This document shows, piece by piece, positions 901-53,703 of a DNA stretch of 64,000 nt. Location of the stretch: assembly GCA_028023455.1 (NCBI GenBank), contig JAQFVV010000007.1:11160001-11224000 (forward strand). Direction: 5' to 3'. The position numbers were made by a program, and so were the translations under genes. The notes beneath the pieces were generated by a model. That model searched no databases. It had not been told where the DNA came from and saw nothing but the letters and a program-made list of their open reading frames with translations. The DNA comes from Epiperipatus broadwayi (taxonomy: Eukaryota; Animalia; Onychophora). Numbering within the stretch: position 1 is the first letter of the stretch; each line of letters begins with the position of its first letter.

Positions 901-2243
901 ATTCATTTGTCTTTAATGATTAATCTTCTCATGGATTAATGCTTTGAGTTTCCATGGGTTGATCAATTTCTGGAAATGCCATGGACAAAAAAAAATTCAG
1001 TGTGTTATTTCAAATCTCCATATTACACTATGTAACCCAATATCTACCTTGTAAAACATTTTATACACAATAAAGTCTCTCTTTTATAAAAAAAATAAAT
1101 AAGAATTTTGAAAATGGCCACATTTTTATAATTACACGATACTATTTCATTTATTTGCCAACAAGTGTCATGTTTTTTAACTGCAAATGTCCACATTTTA
1201 AAACTGTTTTACGCTTTCCTAAATTTATACCCTATTTTATAATAAATACAAAGTACATATTTTATACATTTACATGTATAGCAGAAATTATTTTTGCTTG
1301 TTTTTACAATATAAAATTAATAAAAAGTTACCTAAGAACTTTTATGACTAAGTAAATATCCAGTTTAACATAATTGTCTATTTATTAAACACAAACTCTA
1401 TGAAATTTTAAATTTCAATGATATAATTAATGATTTTGCAAAATAAAAAGAAAGAAAAGTAAATTTTGTGAAAGAATTGGATTTCACTGTAAATTTTGAG
1501 GCGGTAAACATGCAAGTACTTATATGTTAGATTATTTTTATCATCTAGAATTAATTGTTGAATAGATACTTATCAAAAGCATTCAAGTGTTAGCAATAGC
1601 ATATGGGTTTGGGTATAACATAACATTTTGAGTGGTATTATTTTCTCTCTTGAAGTGATGATAGAATAACAATACTAGTATGGGAATAAAATATAGGATC
1701 TTTAAATTCATGAATACTGGATTTAAAGTGGCATTAGTTGTTTAGAAAATAACCTTAAATTCAATATTTGGGAATCTAAAGATCCCAAATCCAATTATGT
1801 TATTGGTCGGGTGAGCTAGTAACACTTAAATAAGAGAGGGGAATAATACCACTTGAAATATTGTATGATATATTAACCAAAGTGCTATTACTAATAGGTG
1901 AATATATTTGAAAAGTTTACATAAAGTTTGAATTTTTTTAAAGAAATATATCCATTAAATCCAGATAATGAAAATAGTCCATCATACACCTACAAGTAAA
2001 ATGTCACCATTACACATTTTCAGCCAAGCAATAATCATACGATTATTTACTTTTTTAAATATTTAATTATCAGTTTATTATTGTTACCAGCATATAAAAA
2101 TTATAAATTATAATTTATTAGAACCTAAATCATAATGTTTTCAACAGACTGATTTTTGTCCCATGCCTTGAAAACTTCAGAGATGGCATTACTTGGCATT
2201 TCTTTTCCCCTTTTTAACTTAAAAAGTAGTAACTTGATATGTT

Positions 2244-2347
2244 TTTTTTCTCATGTGTCATAGCATCAGCCGGGAAGCGAACCCACTAACCCGGGACAAC
2301 TGCTTATAAAGCAGCTGTTACTGACCTCTCGACCACCAATGATTGAC
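2244..2347 (-). mobile_element. tRNA-Gly(TCC)-derived short SINE/retropseudogene with A-tail and 13-bp TSD
   Basis: Minus strand reads TCATTGGTGGTCGAGAGGTCAGTAACAGCTGCTTTATAAGCAGTTGTCCCGGGTT[AGTGGGTT]CGCTTCCCGGCTGATGC, which follows the eukaryotic tRNA-Gly(TCC) pattern (AGCTGCCTTCCAAGCAGTTGACCCGGGTTCGATTCCCGG) with A/B boxes. It ends in TGAG+A-run. The TSD aacttgatatgtt lies at 2231-2243 and 2348-2360. Confidence 0.8.
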
Positions 2348-5300
2348 AACTTGATATGTTAATCACTAAAAATTAAAAAAATATTTATTGTAGTTAATCT
2401 TGTTGCAAAAAAATACATTTATTTTCAATTTTTACAGTATATGAATAAGATAAATAAAATGAAAGGTTAGAGGGCAAAATGGAAAACTAATTTTATTTAA
2501 TTGTTACAATTTTATTTACCATTATCAAACTCACTCCACTCACAATTTTGACACCATCCACCTCAGATAAATACAGAAATGATTATTATTAATCGTTTCC
2601 TAAACTAGACATTATCTCTAGCACAGATATAAACTTTAAACCTGTTAATGATTAATATATCTGATTTTTTAAAAGACAGATTAACAAATTATTAATTATA
2701 AAGGAGTACGCTCTTTTAGATGATAGATTTTTTAATAGTTTTATTAAGTCCTTCAATTCTGTTAATTTGTCCATAAATTTGGTAGTTATTAGTTATGTGG
2801 TTCATAATTTGTGGTAACTATCTACAAAGGTCGGTGTCTATTAACTTTCATTAAATAAGCAGATGAGACAATTCCTCAGTGATTAAACTTAGCTGTCTTT
2901 AGGATTGGAGATGGAAAAAAAAACATTTGTCTCAACCTTTATAAAAATTCTACTTTTATGCTATGGTTTTCGATTGTTTGAAAATATTTTTGGTTGAGCA
3001 TTTTAAAGAGTATCACAATTTGATGTAAATCTTAAATGTGAGCCTATATTTTGAATTATATGTAAATATAATTCACTTATTAGCTTTTAATAAATTTTCT
3101 GTGAGACAACTTTTTTTGTAATAATTGGTAGAGGAATTTAGAAGAAAAAGAAACTGCCGAAGAATAGATTTGAAGAAGCAAGTAATATTTTTAATAATAT
3201 TATGCGTATATACAAATGCAATGCAAATGTGTATGCAATAAATATTAAAATTAATATTTGTAATTTACATTTAATATTTATTTTAAATTTTAAGTAGCAG
3301 ACGTTTTAAAGATGTGGAAGATTTGCAAATAGAAAATAAGAAGTATAATTGTTGAATGATTAGGATATGTTCATTCACTATAAAAGGGTATACAAGTTTG
3401 ACAAGCTATGAAATAAGAATTTCAGATTAAAAATCATGTGCCTTTATGATCTTATATGCTAGCCATTTTTGTTGTTTATCATGCTAAACATGAAATGAAA
3501 ATAGTTTTAGAATTATAATATATATATATAACATGCAATATTAAAACTCATAACACCATGCAATAATTTTTTTAAAATACTCTCTAATTTAGCATAAGTC
3601 AAACAGCTGTAAGCGAATCAATTAAAACATATTTAGATACAATACACACTTGATTTAAAAATTTATTCTTTTGTAATTCAATTATATATTATTTTCTTCT
3701 TTTTTGAAGTAGTATAATAAACGATTATTAATGAACACATATGCAAAAAAAGGTAGAATTAAAAAAAAAATCCAGCTTTATTACTGCTTAGCATGCTTTC
3801 AATATATTATGTATATCATATTCATAGCTTATAGTAATATGACTCATAATATAAACTATGAATGTGATATACATGATATACTGAAAGCATGATATGCAGT
3901 AATAAAGCTAAATATTTTTTAAAAATCTACCTTTTTTGCACATGTGTTAATTAACAGTCATTTATTATATTAATCTTTTCTATCCAAAGCGTTTTAATCA
4001 ATTTTCTATATTAATAAATGATGCAAAAAATAAATAGATGCTTTATTTTTGTTAAATTTTAATTTATGCTAGGTTAGATAGAATCTCAAAATATTTATTG
4101 TATAGTGTTGTGAGTTTTAAATTCGAATGTTACATATAACAGTTAGAAATTATTAATTGTTATTGATATTGGAATTATCTAAGTGTTGAATGATTTCTAA
4201 TGACTGTATATATTGAACTGTTTTACATACATATGATTCAAATATATTGACAGTTGGTAATATTTAAAAAAGCTTTGACCCATTCATATTTTGGAAGACA
4301 AAAGAAATGTCTTTTGGCCAATTCGCCCTCTGTTGAATTCTTTTGTAAATATTATACGTTAAAATGCATGTAAAATGGTATATTTTATTATAATAAATGT
4401 TTTTCTTAAGATTTTGCATTAAAAGGCATGAAATTCAAAATTGCCACTCTTATAATAGACATAAGCCTCATCCTGACATGTTCAGCCATTATCTGTTGCC
4501 AAGGCTGTAAAACATTCAGCGTTTTACAACATTGTAGTTTCCAATGATGCAAAAACATGTTTATTTGCTAATTTATTACACTTTTAGATATTTTTTTAAA
4601 AATAATTTACACTATATTTATTAGATATCAAGAAATATAAATTATTAATAACTTAGTTTGACTTGAAATATTTTATTTTTATAAATATAATGTTATATTA
4701 GCATCTAATGTAAGAATAGCCTGAAGCAAATTAGAAAACTAGTATTGACGTAAACAATCTACTTTATATTTACGAGTAAGAAAATATCCAATTTTTGCAA
4801 TGAATATTCAAAAAATTTAAACTTTTAAAGTATAATTCATTAGATATAAGAGAAATAAATAAATATTCATTTCGATGTTTCATTGATTTTATAAACTGAA
4901 AATAATCTTTCTAGAAACAATGATGTGTAAAGTCTTTGTTTTGATTACATCTTAATTTTTTTAATATTTACAGAAACAAAATGTGAACATTTAAAATTTA
5001 TTTCAGTAGTAAACAAAAATATCTATCAAATGCAGTCAAATTAATTTTTTTCTGATAAGTAATAATCATTTTATCATATATTTTACATTGATGTTTGAGA
5101 CAAAAAAAAACTATCAGAAATAGCAAAATTCAGTAGGATTAAAAAAAGTAAAATTTAAAGATCATTTAAAAGAGCAATTTTTTTTTTGGTTAGTATGCTT
5201 TACTTTTTTAGATAAAGTACAGAGAAAGTTATTTGTGTTTTGAATTATTTATTTAATTAAAAAAAAATAAAAATTAAAATTGCAGATAAATAAAAAAAAA

Positions 5301-6451
5301 GACGTTTCCAACATAAAAGATTAGGATCAGAAAAAACCTTTTAAATTATAATTAAAGATGGCCACAATAATTTATAAAAAAGAAACTTTGTAATTAAAAA
5401 TATAAAATAAATATGCAAGATTATCATTTTGTATTCTGATAAAAAACAAAAGATAACATATGCACAGAAGTCTAAAAACTGACCCAAGATTATAAAAGGG
5501 CAGAAAAACTTCAAACTATGTCTTATCTGTTTTTTCTTGGCTGGTTCTGGATTACACTCTATGCTGAAATAATTTGTCATGCAGGAGTGGACTGGAGCTT
5601 TTACTGACACCATTCACCATGAAGACAGCAACCCAAAAAGCTTTCATGACTAGCCTTAGGATGGACCAAGAACAGTTTAAAACAAAGACTATGAGCTCTT
5701 ATAACCCAGGAAATAAACACACTACAAAACTTATCAGTAAGTCACAATATTCTTATTCATACCCAATTGTGTCTACTTGTTGTTTGCAAACTAAATTTAA
5801 CTATAAAACTAATGAGAAGCTTCAAATACCAATATAGACATTATTCAATGAACCTTCTAGAAGAAATTTAATTATAACATAAACTTCAAATATTTGATTA
5901 GTATTATTTGGATTAGCATGTGGAAATTCTTTCTAGCATATTAATAATTCTCATTTAAATATGATAATTTGTTATAATAAAAATATTCATATTTAATAAT
6001 CATTTTCATTGTGCGTTATTAATTTTAAGTTTATTAGATTTATTGTTAATAAATTGCATGAAAAATGAATGTTACCTTTGCCAATATGCTTGTTTTATAG
6101 TTAAACCCTGGGAAAAATTCATATAAAAGCTTTAACATAGCAAAAAAATGTAATTCTTGATTTTCTAAATTATTTGCTTCGTAAGTCACGATGTGATGTG
6201 ATGCAATGGATCAGTGAATTCTTGTGTAGAATTCTGGTACCCATTCTAAATAAATTAAAAAACTGATTCCACTGGCAGTGCACATTGCAATAAATAGTAG
6301 GCAAGAAATATAGCAGTTCTCGAGATACCCAGACTCATAAATGATATGAATATATTTTCTTTTTCATAGCTTGATTAACTTGCCTTTCTAGTGCATAAAA
6401 AAAGAACAAAATTAAACTGTGAATGTTAAAATAAACAGTGGACAAAACAAT

Positions 6452-11699: not shown

Positions 11700-12380
11700 G
11701 ACTACAGTGCTTTCTAGATTAAATTCACAATATGTATTGACAGGCCAAGGAAACAACAATACTAAACAAATAGCCAATGTGTCTGAGACAGATCAATGAA
11801 ATAACTAGACTAATAAAATAAATCTGATTGTTCACATTAAGGTAGAAAATCCTCCCTACAAAGCCAAGATATACTGGAGAGAAAGAAATTTTTTTTAGTA
11901 AGTTACAATCATCTCAGCAAATTACATGTCTGCAATTACTCTAACAATAATGTACATTACTCATTTACAGAAAGCTATCAGAGAAGCCCAAGTTTCAAAA
12001 AATAACAACTATCTGAAAGCAGTATCAGACTTTGCAAAAGGCAAATCAATGTGACTGGAAGTTTCTATACTTGTTAGAATATGTCTGACAGTCTTCATTA
12101 CATGATCACCATTACACGCTTGCTCATAACTGTTACTAAAACAGGAAAAACTCTCCATACAGTAATACCACTTGGATCCAAGACTCCTCACTGATGAAAG
12201 CCACAAGCTAGAAATTAGTTTGGTGATGTTTGATGAGTAGACAATAGATAAAGATTTTATGCACTGGCCTTCTGGCATCCATTGATTACTCTGGCTTGCA
12301 CTGAGTGGAACTATTGTATGAAGAGTTTCGCTTATTTTAATAACATTATTCATCCTGATAATTATTTTTGATAACAAATA
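11700..12380 (+). mobile_element. Possible very old hAT (Buster/Charlie-like) transposase fossil
   Basis: Frames give KPRYTGEKEIF, YSNNNV, LEVSILVR and TKTGKTL; the 10.3-kb copy gives SLHRVAHCMKSF. These loosely resemble KPHTIGE, LSNNTV, QLxxFVR, TTGEDIF and HCxxHxEALxxK. Weak. Confidence 0.3.
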
Positions 12381-15992: not shown

Positions 15993-16192
15993 GTGTGTAT
16001 CCAGTGATGATTGGTTAATTTTTTCATCAAACATTTTCTGGTTAAAAGATTATGGAAAATTCTATATGTAGGATACAGTTAAAATTAACATCTATACTAT
16101 ATATATATGTCAACAGATGGCATTCTACCAAAAATACCATCAAGCGTATGTTTACATAAACGTCAGAGCATGCATTCACTATCTCTAACTTT

Positions 16193-16252
16193 AATTCCAC
16201 TTTCAGATCATGATTTCAAGCTATTTGCTATCATCAGTGAAAGACAGGAATT
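16193..16252 (-). ncRNA. Type I hammerhead ribozyme motif (best-preserved copy)
   Basis: Minus strand reads AATTCC-TGT-CTTTCA CTGATGA T-AGC-AAATA-GCT-T GAAA T-CATG-A TC / TGAAAG-T-GGAATT. Stem I is 6+6 bp around an internal loop, the CUGAUGA and GAAA core is intact, stem III is palindromic (ATCATGAT) and the cleavage triplet is AUC. Pair 10.1-11.1 is a non-canonical U-U. Confidence 0.75.
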
Positions 16253-16737
16253 TTAGAAACTAGATCTAAACACAAACTCTGAGCATTTATGAAACAGTTT
16301 CTATTCAGCTTGCAAGTGTGAATCTTTTAGACACGTAATGTCTTCAAACTCAGCATAGCAAGCCAGATAGCTTGAAATCATGATCTGAAAGTGGAATTAA
16401 AGTTAGAGATAGTGAATGCATGCTCTGACATTTATGTAAACATACGCTTGATGGTGTTTTTGGTAGAATGCCATCTGTTGACGTAAATACAAGTGTTAGC
16501 AAGTTTTTAACTTGTTTTTTGTTTTTCATAATTGTACCTTTGAGATCTTTCTAGCAATGATATATATTGCAGAGGCTTCTACTATGTGGTGATGCTGAAC
16601 TGAGATTAGACCCATATAGCTATCTGGCTTGCTATGCTCAGTTTGAAGACATTACGTCTCTAAAAGATTCACACATGCAAGCTGAATAGAAACTGTTTCA
16701 TAAATGCTCAGAGTTTGGGTTTAGATCTAGTTTCTAA

Positions 16738-16797
16738 AATTCCTGTCTTTCACTGATTATAGCAAATAGCTTGAAATCATAATCTGAAAGTGGAATT
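16738..16797 (+). ncRNA. Hammerhead motif copy, probably inactive
   Basis: Same fold, but the core reads CTGATTA (G8 to T) and stem III reads TCATAA, which breaks the palindrome. Confidence 0.6.
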
Positions 16798-17136
16798 AAA
16801 GTTAGAGATAGTGAATGCATGCTCTGACATTTATGTAAACATATGCTTGACGGTGTTTTTGGTAGAATGCCATCTGTTGACATAAATACAAGCGTTAGCA
16901 AGTTTTTAACTTGTTTTTTGTTTTTCATAAATGTACCTTTGAAGTTTTTCTAGCAATGATATATATTGCAGAGGCTTCTACTATGTGGTGTTGCTGAACT
17001 GAGATCAGACCCATATAGCTATCTGGTTTGCTATGCTGAGTTTGAAGACATTATGTGTCTAAAAGATTCACACTTGCAAGCTGAATAGAAACTGTTTCAT
17101 AAATGCTCAGAGTTTGTGTTTAGATCTAGTTTCTAA

Positions 17137-17196
17137 AATTCCTGTCTTTCACTGATGATAGCAAATAGCTTGAAATCATGATTTGAAAGTGGAATT
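17137..17196 (+). ncRNA. Hammerhead motif copy with AUU triplet
   Basis: aattcctgtctttca CTGATGA tagcaaatagctt GAAA tcatga TT tgaaagtggaatt. The core is intact, with C17 changed to U. Confidence 0.65.
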
Positions 17197-17644
17197 AAAG
17201 TTAGAGATAGTGAATGCATGCTCTGATGTTTATGTAAACGTACGCTTGATGGTGTTTTTGGTAGATGCCATCTGTTGACATAAATACAAGCATTAGCACG
17301 TTTTTAACTTGTTTTTTTGTATTTTATATATATTACCAAATATGCTTAGGCTAAAATATAAATTAAATGGAAGCAATTGATCTCAAAGAGCTAAGAATGT
17401 TTATGCTCGTACATCATAAATGTAAAGAAGAAAAGGGTGGCTATTCTTTTCTTCAGCTTTGATATTATTTAAACAAATATTTATTGTTGATACTGATAAT
17501 AAGATATTCAATTCATTTAATGACCATAATTTAAATACAGCATCTATCACACTGAATTCATAGTTAAGTATTATAAGGGAAACATATACTTCTAGTTTTA
17601 AATGCATTATAATACCAATGTAAAGTTAGTGTTATAAGTATAAA

Positions 17645-19642: not shown

Positions 19643-19736
<94 letters not shown>
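19643..19736. repeat. Perfect (TA)n microsatellite, about 47 units
   Basis: Seen directly. Confidence 0.95.
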
Positions 19737-23699: not shown

Positions 23700-24470
23700 C
23701 TCGTTTGAATTTAAGAGCTCATTCATAATTCATTTCATTAACAAAAAATGATTTTTTAATTGATTAGAAAGTTGAAGACTTTCTCGAATCATTTTTTCTG
23801 TGAAATGAACAGGTTCCCCTTCTATTTCATTATCTTTTTCTAAATCTTCTAAGGTATCTAAATTTACTGCCAAACCTTTTTCCAACAGGCATTTAAACTA
23901 TATAAAATTTAATGTGTGTATATAAAACAGGGCAAATCCTGATTTTAAGTGAAATATGAACTTCTTTATTACATAAAAGAAGACCACACAAAAATATATT
24001 AAGAAGAAACATCAATTGCATAACTTCAAAATTGCATTTAAAAAATCCTTACAGATCCAGGTGTATTTACAAAGATTATCATTTCTGAATAAGAAGGACT
24101 TCAAACCTGCCATTTTGTGTGACATTGGTACTCTTGATGTATATGGAATATAGCCTCTTTTTGCAATTGCTTTAATAGTCATATAGTAATCCAGTTTACA
24201 TCTATTTCTAGTTATCAAGAAACTGAATGCACATTAAATTTTCATCTATTTTGATCCATTTTAAGCCATTTATATTATTTAATTCTTTAAACAAATCTTT
24301 AATTGTATTTGCCTTGCTGCATACAAACATATCATCAACATATCGATAATATACAATAATATTTTTTTGATAACATTTCTTTTTCATAATATTTTTTTCA
24401 TAAGTGGAAATTACAAATTTGAGCAACTGTAGACAGACCCATTGGCCAGCCATTACCCATTTTCTAAAAA
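23700..24470 (-). mobile_element. Penelope-like retroelement (PLE) fossil, RT to C-terminus
   Basis: ORF 24208-24453 contains YYRYVDDMF and IQFLD. ORF 24012-24218 contains YIPYTSRVPMSHK. Further downstream, EKMIRESLQL resembles the GIY-YIG C-terminal RESxxI motif. Confidence 0.75.
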
Positions 24471-24879
24471 TCCTTCTTAAAAAAATGCATAAATATTTTT
24501 ATCAAAAAAGCTCAATGTTTTAACTATAAATTTTATTATTTTCACATAAACATTTTTTAAATTTAATGTGTCAGAAATAATTTCAATAGAAACCATCGAT
24601 TGATTGATCCATACATTTCACTTATGTCTAAGGTACATATTACATCATTAACATCAATAATAACATCATAAATTTTACTAACAAAATCAAATGATGAATA
24701 TATTATATATTTACTAAAACCAAGAATTTCTTGTTTATTTCTAAAATGTGATTGTGAAGATAAAATTATTACTCAAATAAATAATCTTAATTTTATGAAA
24801 GTTAATAAATATAGAAAATTTGCATATTCAATTTATCAATAATATTTTTAAAAAAGTGAAAACTAATGTGATTGACATG

Positions 24880-25680
24880 AGGGTTACAAGCCTTTCAGAA
24901 TCACTAAGGAAGCCAGAAGCAGAAACCAGTTTGGGATTGGAGATATTCTAAAAAGCTGGTTAAAAGCTATTGGCAAGGATATCATATAACATTTGTAATA
25001 CAAGCTTATTAATTTTATAGACTATCTGCTGGGTTGTTTCTGTGAGCAGTTTATCTTTAAAATTGTTGAGTAGATTGTTCAATAAAGGGGGAGAACAAAA
25101 TGTATCTTTAGAACATTCCTTTTAGTTTTTGAGAGACTTTTGGGATATATGGAAGGCTTATCCATTTTTTATCCCTACTAGCTTGAAGGTATACAGATTT
25201 ATAGACTATGTTGACTGTGTTAAAATTTTTGTCTTTGTTATATCTTAAATTTTGTAATTATGTAGGGTATATCTGAGTGTTGTTTTTCCTGTCCATTTCA
25301 AGTTTACATAATTTTAAATTTCTATATAAAAATCCTTTGAGACCAGCATATGTGTGAGTCATAAGTGCTAGTTACTTAGAATGAATTGCTTCTCCTATGT
25401 TTATGGTTTCAATGCCATTTTATAGTTGTAAGGTGTCATGTTGCTTCTGAACATACAGATCCAGAAATTTGACACCCTGCTTTTTTCCTTTTTTTCAATA
25501 GTTAATGATAAATTCCAAATTATAATAGTTAAGCTTAAAGAAGACATTTGTTCTAATTCTTGATGAATTTTTGTAATTTGTATATCAATTGCCAAACTAA
25601 AATGCCATCCATACATTTAACATATAATGCATTAGAAGCCAGGGCAAACAATTTTGAGTGGAACCATATCTTCCATCTTT
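24880..25680 (-). mobile_element. Second Penelope-like fossil
   Basis: Minus-strand frames give LTIEKKEK, KFLDLYV and WISLPYIPKVS, typical of the PLE RT thumb/linker region. Frameshifted. Confidence 0.6.
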
Positions 25681-35600: not shown

Positions 35601-36563
35601 AAATGACACACACAAGCAGGCCTGCACACAAGCTCTGCTTAATATTAAAAATATAAAACAATCAAATCTATTATTTATCATGAACAATAAACTAAACATA
35701 AAGTTTATTATATTACAAATTTCATATTGTAATGTTTATAAGATAGTAAACTATAAGTAACTTTCTGCTAGCAAATATATAAATAAACACACACTAAAAG
35801 TATTATAAATTAGAACTTATGTATGTATATGCATATATATATATATATTAGATCATGTACATAATTTTGAAATCGTAAGAAACGATTATAATATTGCAAA
35901 ATAAAACATTTTCTAATTTTTTATTTAAATAATAATTTGATATAAATATTCGAACGTGTATGTAATATATATTATAGGTATAATTCCAGTAAACTTAATA
36001 TAATTTTCAGTTTACTTTTTATTTTATATATTTTAATCGTTGTCAAAAGTCTATTTTTTCTGCATACTAATTAGGTTTGCAAATTAATTACATACGTTTG
36101 CTTATGATGTTTATCGCAAATTTTAAAATCTTAGTAAGAACTTGTAAACAATAATTATAATCCCAGGAAATTTTCTATTGAAATCGCAAATCAGGCCTGG
36201 CAGGCCACCTGTGTTAATTAGAAAAATATATGATAACAAAAGAAAATCTTGCCAATGGTAAAACTAAAATGTTCAATAAAGCGTAAAAAACTGGACACTT
36301 GAGTTATTTTAAAACCTGACCATTTTTAATGTCAATGGCTGAATATTTTTAATTTATTAGCTGCCTTTTTTAGGTAAACAAGTTAAACAACTTCTTCCCC
36401 TCCGCGTATAGAGTTTTGTATTTTGGTGCAAGAAGTAATTTGTGTTGGACATCTAAATTAGCGATATATAATCTTAAGTATTAAGATACATGATGTAAAT
36501 ATATAAATTAGAGTCCGTATTTATTTATTTATTACATTTGAAAATTATTTTAAAGTGGCGTTC

Positions 36564-39066
36564 ATGAGTAAAAGTAATATGGAATCAAAAACTAAGAAAA
36601 AACTATCCAGTGCACAAAATCGTAAACGCCAAGCTGAAAAAATAGCAAACATTAAAAAACAAAGTGGATCACTTAATAAATATCTTAAAATATCAACTGC
36701 TTCTGAAATAGCTTATACTCAACAAGAACCAGAACCGTGCACATCATCTAGATCACATTCACAGGGAACTGTTGAAAATATTGAACAAGATTTTAGTAAG
36801 AAACAGTTAAGTGACAACAAAGTCATTGTGCCAATATCATATCAAATGTGTACAAATTTAGAAGATCCAGCTGAATGGAATAAAATCGATGACAAACTAC
36901 GTGTTATTTTAGTAGAAATGGGGCCTGTTCAAAAGAAAGATATTATATATCCGAACGATGTACATGGCCGTAAATTTTCTGATGTATATTATAATAGAAA
37001 AATGGAAAACGGAGAAGTAGTTTTTCGAAAATGGCTTATTTATTCTGAAATTTTGAACTCTGTGTTTTGCTTTTGTTGCAAAGTTTTTGGATCTACTGAA
37101 TCTAGCCTCATAGAAGGATACAATAATTGGAGAAATTTAAGTACAACTTTACACAGACATGAAACTAGTATGGTTCACATGAAAAGTTTATTGAATTGGA
37201 ATGAACTTGAGAAAAGATTAAAAAACAAAATTACTATTGATGGTCAATCTCAAAATTTATATGAAATGGAAAAGAAACATTGGAGGAGTGTTTTGGAACG
37301 GCTGATTGAAATTATCAAATTCCTTGGAGGTCAAAATTTAGCATTTCGCGGATCATCTGATAAATTATACGAAAAAAATAACGGAATTTTTTTAAAATTA
37401 ATTGAATTATTTGTGAAGTTTGATCTCGTTATGGAAAATCATGTTGAGAGGGCCCTAGATCAAAACAATAGAGTACATTATTTGAGCAAAGATAGCCAAA
37501 ATGAATTATTGGAAATTTTAAGTACAGCAATTAGGGAAACAATTTTATTATCGATAAAGAAATCCAAATATTATTCTATTATTTTAGATTGTACACCAGA
37601 TGCAAGTAAAACTGAACAAATGACCATAATTATTCGCTTTGTTTTTTGTAATAATGGAACGGTTAAAATTAGAGAAAACTTTTTAGGTTTCATAGATATA
37701 ACAGATTCCACTGGACGAGGTTTATGTACAACAATAATTGAACAACTGGAAAAATGGAAGATTCCCATTGAAGACATGCGTGGTCAAGGGTATGATAATG
37801 GGGCCAACATGAAAGGCAAAAAGGCTGGACTTCAAAATTTGATTTTAACCAAAAACCCTCGTGCATTTTACGTACCATGTGCTGCTCATTCTTTAAACTT
37901 AATCATAAACGATGCCGCCAAAGTCAATGTAGATACAATTGGTTTTTTTGCAATTGTTCAAAAAATATACAATTTTTTTTCATCATCTTATAAACGGTGG
38001 TCAATCCTTTTAAAATTTATTAAAACTTTAACTCTAAAACAACCATCAGAAACACGATGGGAAAGCAGAATTGATGCAATCCGGCCTCTACGGTATCAGT
38101 TGGGTGAAATTTATGATGCACTCTATGAAATAATGAACAACGAATCTTTTAATAGAGAAATTCAACATGAAGCTCAATCACTCTGCACTAACCTTAAGGA
38201 TTACAAATTTATTTGTTCTTTAATAATTTGGCATGATATATTAAATAGAATAAATCCTGTCAGTAAAATGCTCCAAAATGTAAATATGAATGCTTCACTT
38301 GCTTTAGAATCGATCGCAAATCTAAATACATTTTTACAAGAATATCGATCAGATTCAAATTTCAAAAACATTCTCAAAATTGCAGATGAACTTAGCGAAG
38401 AGGTTGATGGAGAGAAAGAATTTAAAACTGCCAAAGAAGTTCGACAACGGAAAAAAACTCGTCAATTTGATTACGAGCATCAGGACGAAACACCTCAAAT
38501 ACCTGAAGAAAAATTTAAAATAAACATGTTTTTTACACTTTTAGATGTAGCGATTAATTCTTTAACAGAACGCTTTGAACTCCTCGAAGCATGTTATAAT
38601 AATTTCAATTTTCTATATAAAATATCAGAAATTAATAAGAGCGAGTTACAAGCAAAATGCAAAGATTTAGAAAATATTTTGAAATTTGATAACAGTAAAG
38701 ATATTAATGCTACAGATTTATTCGACTGAATTATGTGCTTTTCGAGATATTTTTCAAAAGGATTTTTTAAATTCTCAAAACCCTTTCGAAACACTTAATT
38801 TTATAGTTTCTAATAATTTATCTATGCCAAACTTATCAATAGCTTTAAGAATATTATTAACATTACCTGTTAGTGTTGCAAGCGGTGAACGCTCTTTTTC
38901 TAAGTTAAAATTAATTAAAACTTACTTGAGAACAACTATGTCACAAAAACGGCTTGTTAATTTGGCATTAATTGCTATTGAAAATGATATTTGTGCAGAA
39001 CTGGAAATAAATACAATCATATCAAGGTTTATTAATATGAAGTCAAGGAGTATAAAATTATTATAA
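36564..39066 (+). pseudogene. hAT transposase (ZMYM1-like, DUF4371-type core plus hAT C-terminal dimerisation domain) with one frameshift
   Basis: ATG at 36564. Motifs present: WLIYS..VFCFCC, LAFRG, ILDCTPD, GQGYDNGANM, CAAHSLNL, TRWESR and SVASGERSFSKLK. One extra base near 38720-38727 separates ORF 36555-38729 from ORF 38686-39066. Confidence 0.9.
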
Positions 39067-50382: not shown

Positions 50383-53300
50383 CAGGCCCGGATTTAAGGT
50401 GATTGGAGCAATTGGGCCCAATCAGGCCCCACACTTGAAGGAGCCCTGCACCACCACCAAAATTAACAAAAAGTTATTTTTCGAAATTTAAAGCAAATTG
50501 CTTTTGACGATAAAGGATAAATTATAAATTATTCAAATAATTAAAAATATATTTATTTTAAGTTCACATTGATGAATGAGATTTATTAGTGTGTTTATTA
50601 TAATATATATATACATTATAATATAGAAAACGGATACCCGTAAATGTCTTTTTTGACTAATGTTTAATTAATCGGATAGTACTCTTTCTCAATTATTCTA
50701 TTATATATGCGTCTTATTCAGCACACTCACATTCATTTTTTGGCATTAGTCATTGTTGCGCTGCACTCGCTATTAAGTAGATGTGGTTACTATCAAATGT
50801 CAATTGTTTATTGGATTTGCAGTTCTCTACTCTTCTAATCATTTTAATTATTAATGTCATATTTTGTGACTATAATTACTAATTGTTAAAAAGGGTAAGT
50901 ACTAATTATATTACATAATATTTATTAATAAGAAATTATATTTAAAATTAAAAATTTAAGCATATTTTGTAATTAAAAATGGATTTAATTTTATCATCAG
51001 ATGTTGAATCCACTGAAATGAGAAAGAGATGTGGGAAGAAAATATAATAGTGGTAGTCTAAAAAGGAAATTAAGTGCAAAAAGGAAAATTGAAAGTGAAA
51101 AACTCAGATGTGCTTTGAACAAATTTTTAAAAATAGATAATGATGACAAAGGTGAAGAGGAAGAAATTGACAAAAATGAAGAAGAAAATGATGATAAAGA
51201 TGAAGAAGAACAGGTAAAAAATAAACAAGAAACACAATTACACAGACCAGAACTGGAAAAAGCAAATTTTGGAATGAAAAAGGAAAAACTGAATATAACT
51301 GATGATCCCGCTTCTTGGCCCGAGATTATTACTCAACAAAAAATTAAAAAAGGTCCTACAAAAATTATCTTAAATGAGTTTCCGCGCCAAGAGGATGGAA
51401 CACCCATTTTAAAAGTGCATCTGAAAAGAAAGCTTATGATTGGTGAAATAATAAGCCGTCCTTGGATAATATATTCTGAATCAGAAGACAGAATATTTTG
51501 TTTTTATTGTCGGCTATTCAATATGGGTGCCTCAATTGCTCTAGCCACTGTAGGATTTAATAACTGGTCAAATATATATAATAGATTAGCCACACATGGA
51601 AAATCAAAAAATCATTTGGTAGCTATGTTAAAATGTACAGAGCTTCAAAAAAGACTATCTGCTGAACAAACAATAAATAATGTTCAACAGAAGTTGTTGA
51701 ACCAAGAAAAAGTTCGTTTGTATAAGATATTTGAAAGATTATTAAGTGTAGTTCAGTTTTTAGCTGAATGAAATATCGCGTTTAGAGGATCCATCGAAAA
51801 CCTAGGTGATGCACGAAATGGAAATTTTCTAGGAATACTTGAATTACTTGAAAAATTTGACCCAGTAATGCAGGATCATATACAAAGAATCACCACAAAA
51901 CAAATACACCAAAGTTATTTAAGCAAAGCAATACAAAATGATAATAAACTTAATAGGCAATATATTAAAAAATAAAATTATTGATAGAATAAAATATGGA
52001 AAATATTTTGCTGTGATTCTGGATTGTACTTCAGATGTCAGTCATCAAGAAAAAATGTCTCCTAGCATCAGATATGTTTCGGATAGAACATTACCAGGCT
52101 CGAATATCGCTATATATGAACAATTTATCAAATTTATACATGTAGAGAGCAGCACAGGAGAAAATCTATTTTTTGTGTTAAAGAAAGAAATTCAAAGTTT
52201 AGGGCTTGACATCAACAATATAAGAGGGCAAGGATATGACAATGGTTCAAACATGTCTCCAGTGTTCAAGCTAGACTCTTAAAAGAAAATCCAAGGGCAT
52301 TTTCTACTCCTTGTGTTTGTCACAATTATAATCTAGTATTGGGAGATGTAGAAAAAATTTTCTCAGAAGCTTTAACCTTCTTTGGTATTCTCCAACACCT
52401 ATAGGTTTTGTTTTTGGCATCTTCAAAAAGATGGTTAGTACTTCTCAAATATGTAAAAGAACTTACTGTGAAGCCTCTTTGCAATACAGGTGGGAATGTC
52501 AGATTCAAAGCATAAAAGCAGTGAGATACCAAATAGGTGAATTTTATGATGCTCTTTACGAAATATCAGAAATTTCCAAAGGTCCACAAATTAAAAGCGA
52601 GGCAGAATCTCTTGGAAATGCAATGAAAGACTAATTTTTTGGTACGATTTATTGTTCCAAGTCAATTATGTAAGCAAGGAACTTAAAGGTAAATCTGTAG
52701 ATGTATCCATTGTACTTTCTTCATTTGAAAAACTTTTAAAATGGTTAAGTGACTACAGAAATACTGGATTTGAACAAGTTTTAGTTCAAGCAAAAACTCT
52801 TGCAGAAGATTTGGAAATATCTAGAGAATTTCAAAATAAAAGGCTTTGGAAAAGGAAAAAAAAACATTTCAATTATGAAGGTGATGATGAACCTATTGTA
52901 GATCCAATAAATGCATACAAGATATCTTTTTTTAATTTTGTTTCAGATAAAGCTACAGAATCACTAAAAAATCGTTTTGAGAAATTGAAAAATCATAATG
53001 ACTTATTTGGGTTTCTGGGAAAATTTCAAAATATGAAAAAAGAAGCACTTCAAAACATGCAGCTAAATTAGAAATTTCTCTAACAGATTCTAAGTTCACA
53101 GAAAATGATGCACTAATAGTGAAGGAAGCTGATATAGATGGAAAAATGTTAGTTGAAGAAATGGAAGCTTTAAAATTTATCATTCCATCAGAATTTTTTG
53201 AAAATCCATTTAAAATGTTTAAATTTTTATCGGAAAATGATAGAGCAACGGCATTTCCAAACTTGTTTATTGCTCTCCGAATATATTTAACAATTCCAGT

Positions 53301-53703
53301 GAGCATTGCTTCTGGAGAGAGCTCATTTTCCAGGCTAAAACTAATAAAAAACTATCTGAGATTGATAATGAATCAGGATAGATTAAATAGTTTAGCCATT
53401 ATGTCGATTGAAAGTGAAGAAGCAAGAAAATTGGATTTTCAAACTATTTTAAAAGAATTTACAGAACAAAAACTTAGAAATATGTAAATTCATATATTCA
53501 TATTCAATGATGTACATTTATATTCAATAAAATGAAATTGTTTTTGTATTTTGTACATTTTTATTTTTTAATATATGTAGAAGTTTACCTATCTTATGAT
53601 CCATGATATTTGATTTATATATATATTGAATTTGCAATTTATTTAAATATTTAATATATAGAGGGCCCCACAAAAAAAATCCGATCGGGCCCCGCATTCC
53701 TAA
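50383..53703 (+). mobile_element. Decayed hAT transposon with left TIR; right TIR not found
   Basis: Left end CAGGCCCGGATTTAAGG with GGGCCC subterminal repeats. Right subterminal GGGCCCC repeats at 53662-53693. No matching terminal ...GGGCCTG or TSD seen. Confidence 0.85.
51031..53487 (+). pseudogene. hAT transposase (ZMYM1-like) with several stops and frameshifts
   Basis: PWIIYSESEDRIFCFYC, AFRG, ILDCTSD, RGQGYDNGSNM, RWE, and VSIASGESSFSRLK (ER changed to ES) across ORFs 51031-51771, 51938-52282, 52431-52634, 52652-53071 and 53119-53487. Confidence 0.9.

Follow-up and report, generated by a model that had tools for sequence, protein, structure and literature searches.

Probable insertion by Penelope-type reverse transcription of a 399-nt hammerhead-bearing retroelement in the onychophoran Epiperipatus broadwayi

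What kind of element is a 399-nt tandem repeat that carries a hammerhead ribozyme motif, and how did it come to lie where it does? We address this question at one locus in a window of 64,000 nucleotides, by which we mean the whole stretch of DNA that was analysed (Epiperipatus broadwayi assembly GCA_028023455.1, contig JAQFVV010000007.1, positions 11,160,001 to 11,224,000). The host assembly is AT-rich and measures 5.6 Gb, and local GC content is about 26%. Our reading is that positions 16102-17328 of the window are very probably a single insertion of a 399-nt non-autonomous retroelement without an ORF, belonging to the kind known as metazoan non-LTR retrozymes and placed by target-primed reverse transcription of the type used by Penelope-like elements (PLEs). 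A first-pass annotation had reported a 399-bp tandem repeat, and the repeat is real: Tandem Repeats Finder returns a period of 399 nt, with 2.4 copies and 94% matches, at 16367-17317. The span first given was 16106-17320; the end of the element lies at 17328 and not at 17320, and an inverted partial unit at 16102-16372 had been overlooked.

The element has two arms, an inverted one of 271 nt and after it a direct one of about 960 nt, and is bordered by TA-rich DNA on both sides. The left target flank (16094-16105) is a remnant of a TA-rich microsatellite; on the minus strand the left end of the element reads ...CCATCTGTTGACATA and then TATATA..., and because of this TA microhomology the boundary between flank and element is ambiguous within 16102-16106. 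The inverted arm (16102-16372, minus strand) is a partial unit that covers unit positions 233-399 and then 1-104 and has its outer end at reverse transcription (RT) start site A (unit position ~100, ...GTTGACATA). Its complementarity to the direct units is 96-98%, and its identity with the family consensus 97-99%. The two arms meet head to head at 16364-16372, where the inverted arm stops at 16372 and the direct repeat register begins at 16364, with a short overlap of ATAGCT microhomology. By repeat finding and comparison with the consensus, the direct arm (16373-17328, plus strand) resolves into a 5'-truncated unit, full units at 16386-16784 and 16785-17183 (96.5% and 97.2% identical to the consensus, respectively) and a 145-nt terminal part (93.8%), which finishes at RT start site B (unit position ~147), here mutated to ...GTATTTTATA. 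The right target flank, again TA-rich as read directly from the letters, occupies 17329-17336. Since its full units are 96.5-97.2% identical to the consensus, or about 3% away from it, the copy in the window is older than most. The longest ORF within the array has 64 aa, and the profile of the unit (399 nt, tandem, low in GC, without ORF and without LTR, PBS or PPT, with one type I hammerhead each) is that of metazoan non-LTR retrozymes.

The consensus hammerhead is of type I, with a helix I of two segments around an internal loop, a helix II of 3 bp on a U.U base, and a helix III of 2 bp with a palindromic CAUG cap. On the minus strand, the motif at 16193-16252 is perfect and equals the family consensus exactly, with cleavage predicted after the C at 16206. 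On the plus strand, the copy at 17137-17196 has its catalytic core and helices intact and carries U at position 17 (17183) where the consensus has C, cleavage being predicted after 17183; junction contigs of four out of four sequencing runs have C at this place. The copy at 16738-16797 is inactivated, with G8>U at 16758 and a G>A change at 16781 that breaks the palindrome of helix III. At the cleavage site 16385 only the 3' half is found (16373-16398), because the inversion junction cuts the motif there. The conserved core (C3 U4 G5 A6 N7 G8 A9, G12 A13 A14, A15.1-U16.1, H17) is present in the consensus, at 16193-16252 and, with U as H17, at 17137-17196; it is broken by G8>U at 16738-16797 and absent at 16373-16398. 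Two of the three plus-strand ribozyme sites are dead, and since just one plus-strand ribozyme has an intact core, the locus alone cannot release a 399-nt monomer. The statement that each unit contains an intact motif is accordingly right for the sequence that was written out, which is the family consensus, but wrong for the plus-strand copies of the window, of which one is a half, one has G8>U and one has U17. The cleavage phase first proposed, after 16385, 16784 and 17183, is correct, and the U.U at 10.1-11.1 described for all full copies proves to be a family trait.

Searched with a generic descriptor of type I hammerheads, the window gives 3 matches against 0.15 expected, a 20-fold excess, the third match being a relic of another family at ~12191. 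The search with the Rfam hammerhead models that had been recommended returned nothing in the window at the gathering score or at E<=10. The sole strong Rfam match there, to MIR5048 at 16137-16454, was rejected as a miRNA, because it is simply the hairpin into which the two arms fold.

The unit in the window represents a family, here called family 1, which is abundant and young. A first-look search of the genome, of the kind that had been suggested for copy number, gives at least 1,683 candidate loci of the 399-nt unit, and the copies are 95-98% identical to the window unit. Across 63 full units from 27 loci, mean divergence from the family's own consensus is 1.6%, mostly at CpG sites, and non-CpG divergence is 0.7-1.0%; of 101 hammerhead copies taken from 27 loci, 56 match the consensus motif without a change. 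Among dead copies the non-CpG divergence of the hammerhead (0.7%) and of the rest of the unit (1.0%) show no clear difference, as expected under neutral decay after insertion. Family 2 has a unit of 414 nt, is ~79% identical to family 1 and occurs at no fewer than 1,514 candidate loci, and family 3 has a unit of ~420 nt, is ~70% identical to family 1 and, with at least 2,993 candidate loci whose copies are 91-93% alike, is the most numerous of the three. A fourth hammerhead family was found in sampled loci, and has left a relic at 12175-12349 of the window.

Is the hammerhead fold real? We compared the families in an alignment of three families only, so that the comparison has low statistical power. 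With this limit, 93.8% of alignment cells pair, whereas sliding the 3' partners lowers the figure to 29-46%. Pair 20-64 and pair 50-57 change on both sides, from UA to CG, and two further pairs turn into wobble pairs. Each family has a perfect palindrome of its own as helix III (UCAUGA, UCAGCUGA and CCAAUUGG), and distal helix I has been re-made in each (AAUUCC/GGAAUU, CUCC/GGAG and GACCC/GGGUU). At the level of sequence, the comparison shows that compensatory changes preserve the predicted hammerhead fold in the two sister families, so the stem covariation that had been named as a check is seen between the three families. Moreover, the compensatory changes and re-invented palindromes across families that are 20-30% apart argue for selection on master copies. 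Position 10.1-11.1 is U.U in family 1, G.U in family 2 and a canonical G-C in family 3; family 1 lacks the canonical G10.1-C11.1 pair, and its U.U is expected to weaken catalysis. The core of family 3 carries A9>U. None of the Rfam hammerhead models of clan CL00010 matched families 1 and 2 at the gathering score or E<=10, and the family 3 motif has a sub-threshold match to Hammerhead_HH9 (30.5 bits against a cut-off of 52 bits, E ~1e-4).

Folding predictions do not favour the ribozyme fold of the monomer. The monomer hammerhead fold has -5 kcal/mol against -15 for the minimum free energy (MFE) structure in ViennaRNA, and in the MFE structure the core pairs with the helix III strand. Such a penalty on the predicted monomer fold is what a dimer-dependent or transient ribozyme would be expected to show, though it is no proof of one. 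The axolotl ribozyme HHR_Amex2 resembles the 399-nt family in its U.U mismatch under helix II and in its 2-bp helix III with a tetraloop cap, and it cleaves weakly as a monomer (22% in one hour) and efficiently as a dimer (PMC7229834). Folded as a circle, the whole unit is predicted to reach -124 kcal/mol with 72% of it paired (z = -8), a strong self-pairing like that of the retrozyme circles described (PMC7229834).

The strongest evidence on how these elements moved comes from the anatomy of their insertions. Genome-wide, nearly every insertion is head to head, with an inverted arm and then a direct arm. For closer inspection we used 27 non-overlapping insertions of families 1 and 2 that have both ends inside the locus; all 27 have this order with a variable inner junction, and all consist exclusively of 399- or 414-nt units without an ORF. 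With unit positions counted from the cleavage site, the outer ends fall at two fixed sites, separated by 47 nt, namely ...GTTGACATA (~100) and ...TTTTTCATA (~147, or ~158 in family 2). The end pairs are heterotypic in 21 insertions and homotypic in none, the remaining 6 being unclassifiable by motif (binomial p = 5e-7). TA repeats abut 51 of the 54 outer ends, and the same two junctions with TA repeats are present in contigs of an independent sequencing run. A search of sequencing runs located the family in runs from two organisms, none of the listed runs being recorded as RNA; four of them, in the form of Logan contigs that look like DNA, include junctions with TA flanks at unit positions 104 and 145. 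The inner ends lie within ~70 nt of each other in unit coordinates in 11 of 19 insertions, a hand count with a weak excess. Variants within arrays are mostly confined to one unit (435 single, 84 partial and 21 array-wide), and the partial ones that were inspected are mostly at CpG-related sites. Furthermore, the arms read straight through the cleavage sites, and for this reason we take the template to have been uncleaved (multimeric) RNA or a religated circle.

This anatomy has a counterpart in PLEs. Their insertions comprise partial tandems with an inverted 5'-truncated copy and a tail of 30-40 bp at one end only, with a bias towards (TA)n (Craig et al. 2021, PMC8557442); in vitro, both target strands are cut and extended, and reverse transcription begins at a pair of neighbouring internal sites, with the tail corresponding to the interval that separates them (Frangieh et al. 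2024, PMC11167929). The 399-nt element is like them in its partial tandem plus inverted 5'-truncated copy, its tail at one end only, the extension of both target strands and its AT-rich or (TA)n targets, and comparison with both studies supports the anatomy as diagnostic of PLE target-primed reverse transcription (PMC8557442, PMC11167929). In both, a hammerhead lies upstream of the RT starts, the first start being ~85-92 nt after the cleavage site in the Anolis PLE and ~100 nt after it in the 399-nt element (PMC11167929). There are also differences, since the 399-nt element encodes nothing, has a tail of 47 nt (~56 nt in family 2) compared with 30-40 bp, and contains a full type I motif whereas PLEs contain a minimal hammerhead variant. 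Priming apparently uses CAUA/(TA)n microhomology in the 399-nt element, whereas the start site of the Anolis PLE is non-homologous to its target (PMC11167929).

Autonomous PLEs coexist with this dispersed multi-copy retrozyme family in the genome. The PLE fossils that had been placed 6-9 kb away correspond to a broken relic with the RT motif RYVDDMF (24060-25467, minus strand, with a small inverted piece at 24732-24876), which is not part of the insertion and lies 6.7-8.1 kb downstream of it. Its closeness is meaningless by itself, because it is one of at least 24,631 candidate RT matches of its family in the genome. Intact PLE ORFs extend up to 775 aa. Pfam gave no match for the 775- and 722-aa ORFs, so their identity rests on sequence motifs and on their Atlas neighbours, which carry RVT_1, HTH_animal and GIY-YIG; the abundant PLE of this genome is an RT plus C-terminal GIY-YIG element. 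Copies of this PLE end at two sites 46 nt apart, both reading ...TTACATATAT against (TA)n, a geometry like that of the retrozyme. Local alignment of the 399-nt unit with the sampled 3' UTR and spacer of one PLE family scored 23, compared with 22 +/- 2.8 for shuffles, and detected no similarity to that family beyond the terminal CATA(TA)n; the partnership is consequently drawn from the shared end signature only. We propose that the abundant PLE family is the mobilising machinery. The original suggestion of a non-autonomous ribozyme retroelement, with a type I hammerhead that acts as a dimer and probably moved by a PLE reverse transcriptase, gains support from the large young family, the fold kept by compensatory changes and the insertion anatomy.

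These observations are compatible with the following sequence of events. A PLE ribonucleoprotein would cut both strands of a (TA)n target and would use each of the 3' ends to prime reverse transcription of the retrozyme RNA, starting at two internal CAUA sites that lie next to each other. Each cDNA would span one to several unit lengths on a multimeric or circular template, passing the ribozyme sites, and the two cDNAs would be joined at a variable point. Transcription, cleavage and circular RNA of the 399-nt element are what we infer by analogy with tested retrozymes, in which case transcripts of intact arrays would self-cleave through paired (double) hammerheads and the 399-nt monomers would be circularised by a host RNA ligase. 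A bolder idea, which we put forward only tentatively and think rather unlikely to be correct, is that the arrays are born in one step, with a dimeric PLE ribonucleoprotein priming both (TA)n strands on one circular 399-nt RNA, at neighbouring CAUA sites 47 nt apart, and the two reverse transcriptases chasing each other round it (rolling-circle reverse transcription). If this were true, the one-of-each rule (21 of 21) and the nearby inner ends would be genomic evidence, the first of its kind, that initiation on a circle is coordinated between two sites and both strands, and the tandem form of animal retrozymes would be directly explained.

Type I hammerheads in tandem or SINE-like repeats of 330-500 bp are known from newt satellite 2, Schistosoma Sm-alpha and the cave-cricket repeat pDo500, where helix III is weak, so that cleavage of multimeric transcripts by double hammerheads is favoured. 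These repeats differ from the 399-nt family in host and are unrelated to it in sequence. The Rfam hammerhead models were probably built from repeats of this type, and they leave the 399-nt family unscored. The closest kind to the element described here are the metazoan non-LTR retrozymes (Cervera & de la Pena 2020, PMC7229834), especially the axolotl Rtz_353 / HHR_Amex2 family and the mussel family of 350-390 bp. Like the 399-nt element, they lack ORFs, are low in GC and occur beside PLEs, and each unit of these tandem repeats of 170-400 bp bears a single type I hammerhead (PMC7229834). As each family is specific to its species, homology in sequence is not expected. For those families, circular RNA, self-cleavage and ligation have been demonstrated, whereas for the 399-nt element they are predictions; on the other hand, head-to-head arms, two fixed ends and (TA)n targeting are not described for them (PMC7229834). 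The LTR retrozymes of plants (PMC4918200) are similar to the metazoan kind in being non-autonomous, in bearing hammerheads and in having a circular RNA intermediate. They are unlike the 399-nt element in that their hammerheads are of type III and sit in LTRs, that a PBS, a PPT and TSDs of 4 bp are present, and that Gypsy LTR elements mobilise them.

How far does the spread of these elements depend on the ribozyme? It is conceivable that the unit is simply a short non-coding repeat mobilised by PLEs, for whose spread the hammerhead is unneeded; the template would then be unprocessed multimeric transcripts, with no circle, and the motif would either ride along as a legacy of a PLE pseudo-LTR or act at some step other than templating. 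Hammerhead mutants of the Anolis PLE insert normally in vitro, and not one RNA-seq read stops at the cleavage site of this element (PMC11167929). The arms of the retrozyme insertions cross the cleavage sites uninterrupted, which speaks for such transcripts, although a religated circle would likewise read through the site. Family 3 has A9>U in its core and yet occupies its thousands of candidate loci, folding predictions disfavour the monomer ribozyme, and the comparison of dead copies given above offers no clear sign that the hammerhead has changed less than the remainder of the unit. Against this stand the fold preserved across the divergent families, with its re-invented palindromes, and the abundant circular RNAs that tested animal retrozymes of the same design yield (PMC7229834). 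We consider a spread without need of the hammerhead a serious possibility, though we lean against this account as a whole. Whether or not it is right, the necessity of the ribozyme for spread is doubtful, because it is dispensable in the Anolis PLE in vitro and because the most numerous family is the one in which A9 is mutated.

Two further accounts would deny the element its standing as an independent retrozyme lineage or as a retroelement at all. The repeat could derive from an autonomous PLE family outside our sample, either as its pseudo-LTR or through internal deletion. Xenopus retrozymes are sister to PLE pLTRs (bioRxiv 10.64898/2026.07.22.740005), the insertions have a PLE-like tandem and inverted architecture with a tail, and one PLE family alone was compared with the unit. 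We nevertheless hold this to be quite unlikely, given that the insertions of families 1 and 2 with both ends (27 of 27) are made of pure 399- or 414-nt units with no ORF, and that the unit has no similarity to the UTR of the abundant PLE. The single retrozyme-like repeat that lies beside a PLE ORF (locus L065) was rejected as a pLTR, because it is a separate insertion of family 3 that possesses an inverted arm and a (TA)n end of its own; this copy has lost the ribozyme segment. The other account takes the element for an ordinary satellite or fold-back repeat that multiplied as DNA, through unequal crossing-over or DNA transposition, and whose hammerhead-like motif is due to chance or is a fossil. 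Fold-back elements also show tandem plus inverted repeats, the Rfam hammerhead models are silent on the window, and the long hairpin of the arms attracts a spurious miRNA-family match, but thousands of dispersed short insertions are not long arrays, and the two fixed outer ends, strictly one of each, with variable inner junctions and (TA)n targets are the signature of PLE target-primed reverse transcription and not of terminal-inverted-repeat transposition. At the same time the hammerhead motif is 20-fold over chance and covaries, which makes amplification of an ordinary repeat very improbable in our judgement.

Read as a retrozyme inserted by PLE-type target-primed reverse transcription, the 399-nt element is a metazoan non-LTR retrozyme and so of a known kind; its PLE-style insertion anatomy is not described in the retrozyme papers used for comparison, PMC7229834 among them. 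Earlier ties between retrozymes and PLEs consisted of co-occurrence and pLTR homology, to which this family adds a link in the anatomy of insertion. It is a young family with thousands of near-identical insertions that bear the complete PLE signature, with both strands primed, two starts used one each, a tail and (TA)n targets, and an anatomy so clear in a young family is of moderate interest to specialists. For annotation, it explains fold-back and tandem repeats that are liable to be miscalled as satellites or miRNA hairpins. Finally, the genome of E. broadwayi is a good natural data set for the choice of start site by PLE reverse transcriptases, for the use of a circle versus a multimer as template, and for the role of the hammerhead in the spread of these elements.

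At the inner junctions in loci of family 1, the 399-nt-unit family of the window insertion (L001-L030), and of its 414-nt-unit sister, family 2 (L043-L062), the inverted arm and the direct arm often end no more than ~70 nt apart on the unit (11 of 19, counted by hand). Several of the direct arms in these loci begin near position 104, and several of the inverted arms near position 143, adjoining the two start sites, the fixed outer ends of the arms (unit positions ~100 and ~147) that abut (TA)n. The positions of these junctions hint at two polymerases colliding on one template. Penelope-like elements (PLEs), the inferred mobilisers of the retrozymes, share this type of target: a perfect (TA)47 microsatellite at window 19643-19736, 2.3 kb from the retrozyme insertion, is of the kind used by retrozymes and PLEs alike. 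At L065, a family-3 insertion (~420-nt unit; L065:3760-4370), in which a hammerhead segment of roughly 63 nt has been replaced or deleted, sits directly upstream of a 701-aa PLE ORF, and both elements seem to have inserted at one TA-rich target.

The bulk of the variation within family 1 consists of C>T or G>A changes at CpG sites, which implies CpG methylation of these retrozyme repeats. In the ribozyme, 8 of 101 copies carry C at N7 (family-1 consensus position 372; CUGACGA). The resulting CpG includes G8, which would be lost if the site decayed on its G side. In sequencing run X2 (organism B), the ribozyme and the next ~55 nt (window 16785-16840 and 17135-17183) reach depths of 22,000-78,000 versus ~1,000-6,000 for the remaining unit, that is, 10-70 times as much. 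A variant with two changes, A>T at 16819 and A>G at 16829, accounts for the high depth, which could reflect either expansion of a related family or a short RNA fragment present in abundance.

A relic of a fourth hammerhead-bearing family, roughly 170 nt long, lies at window 12175-12349 and shares 80-84% identity with copies at L043, L036, L042, L029 and L020. In this family helix II is underlain by an A.A mismatch, and helix III is a single base pair capped by the palindrome CUAG, a newt-like dimer type; the window copy, with its hammerhead-like motif at ~12185-12232 (plus strand), is degenerate. The window also holds two plus-strand hAT-superfamily DNA transposons, one (36555-39066) with a 724-aa ORF bearing DUF4371 and, in another reading frame, a hAT dimerisation domain, the other (51031-53487) split into several ORFs but likewise encoding that dimerisation domain. 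At L044, ~0.5 kb from a family-2 array, a minus-strand tRNA-like match (2538-2609; Rfam 36.4 bits, above the gathering score of 29) may represent either a tRNA gene or a SINE derived from a tRNA.

Rfam returned a below-threshold MIR5048 match on the minus strand at window 16137-16454 (61.9 bits versus 160; E = 1e-12), which arises from the long hairpin that pairing of the inverted arm with the direct arm would produce. If read through by transcripts, head-to-head insertions would yield long RNA duplexes, from which small RNAs could plausibly be made.
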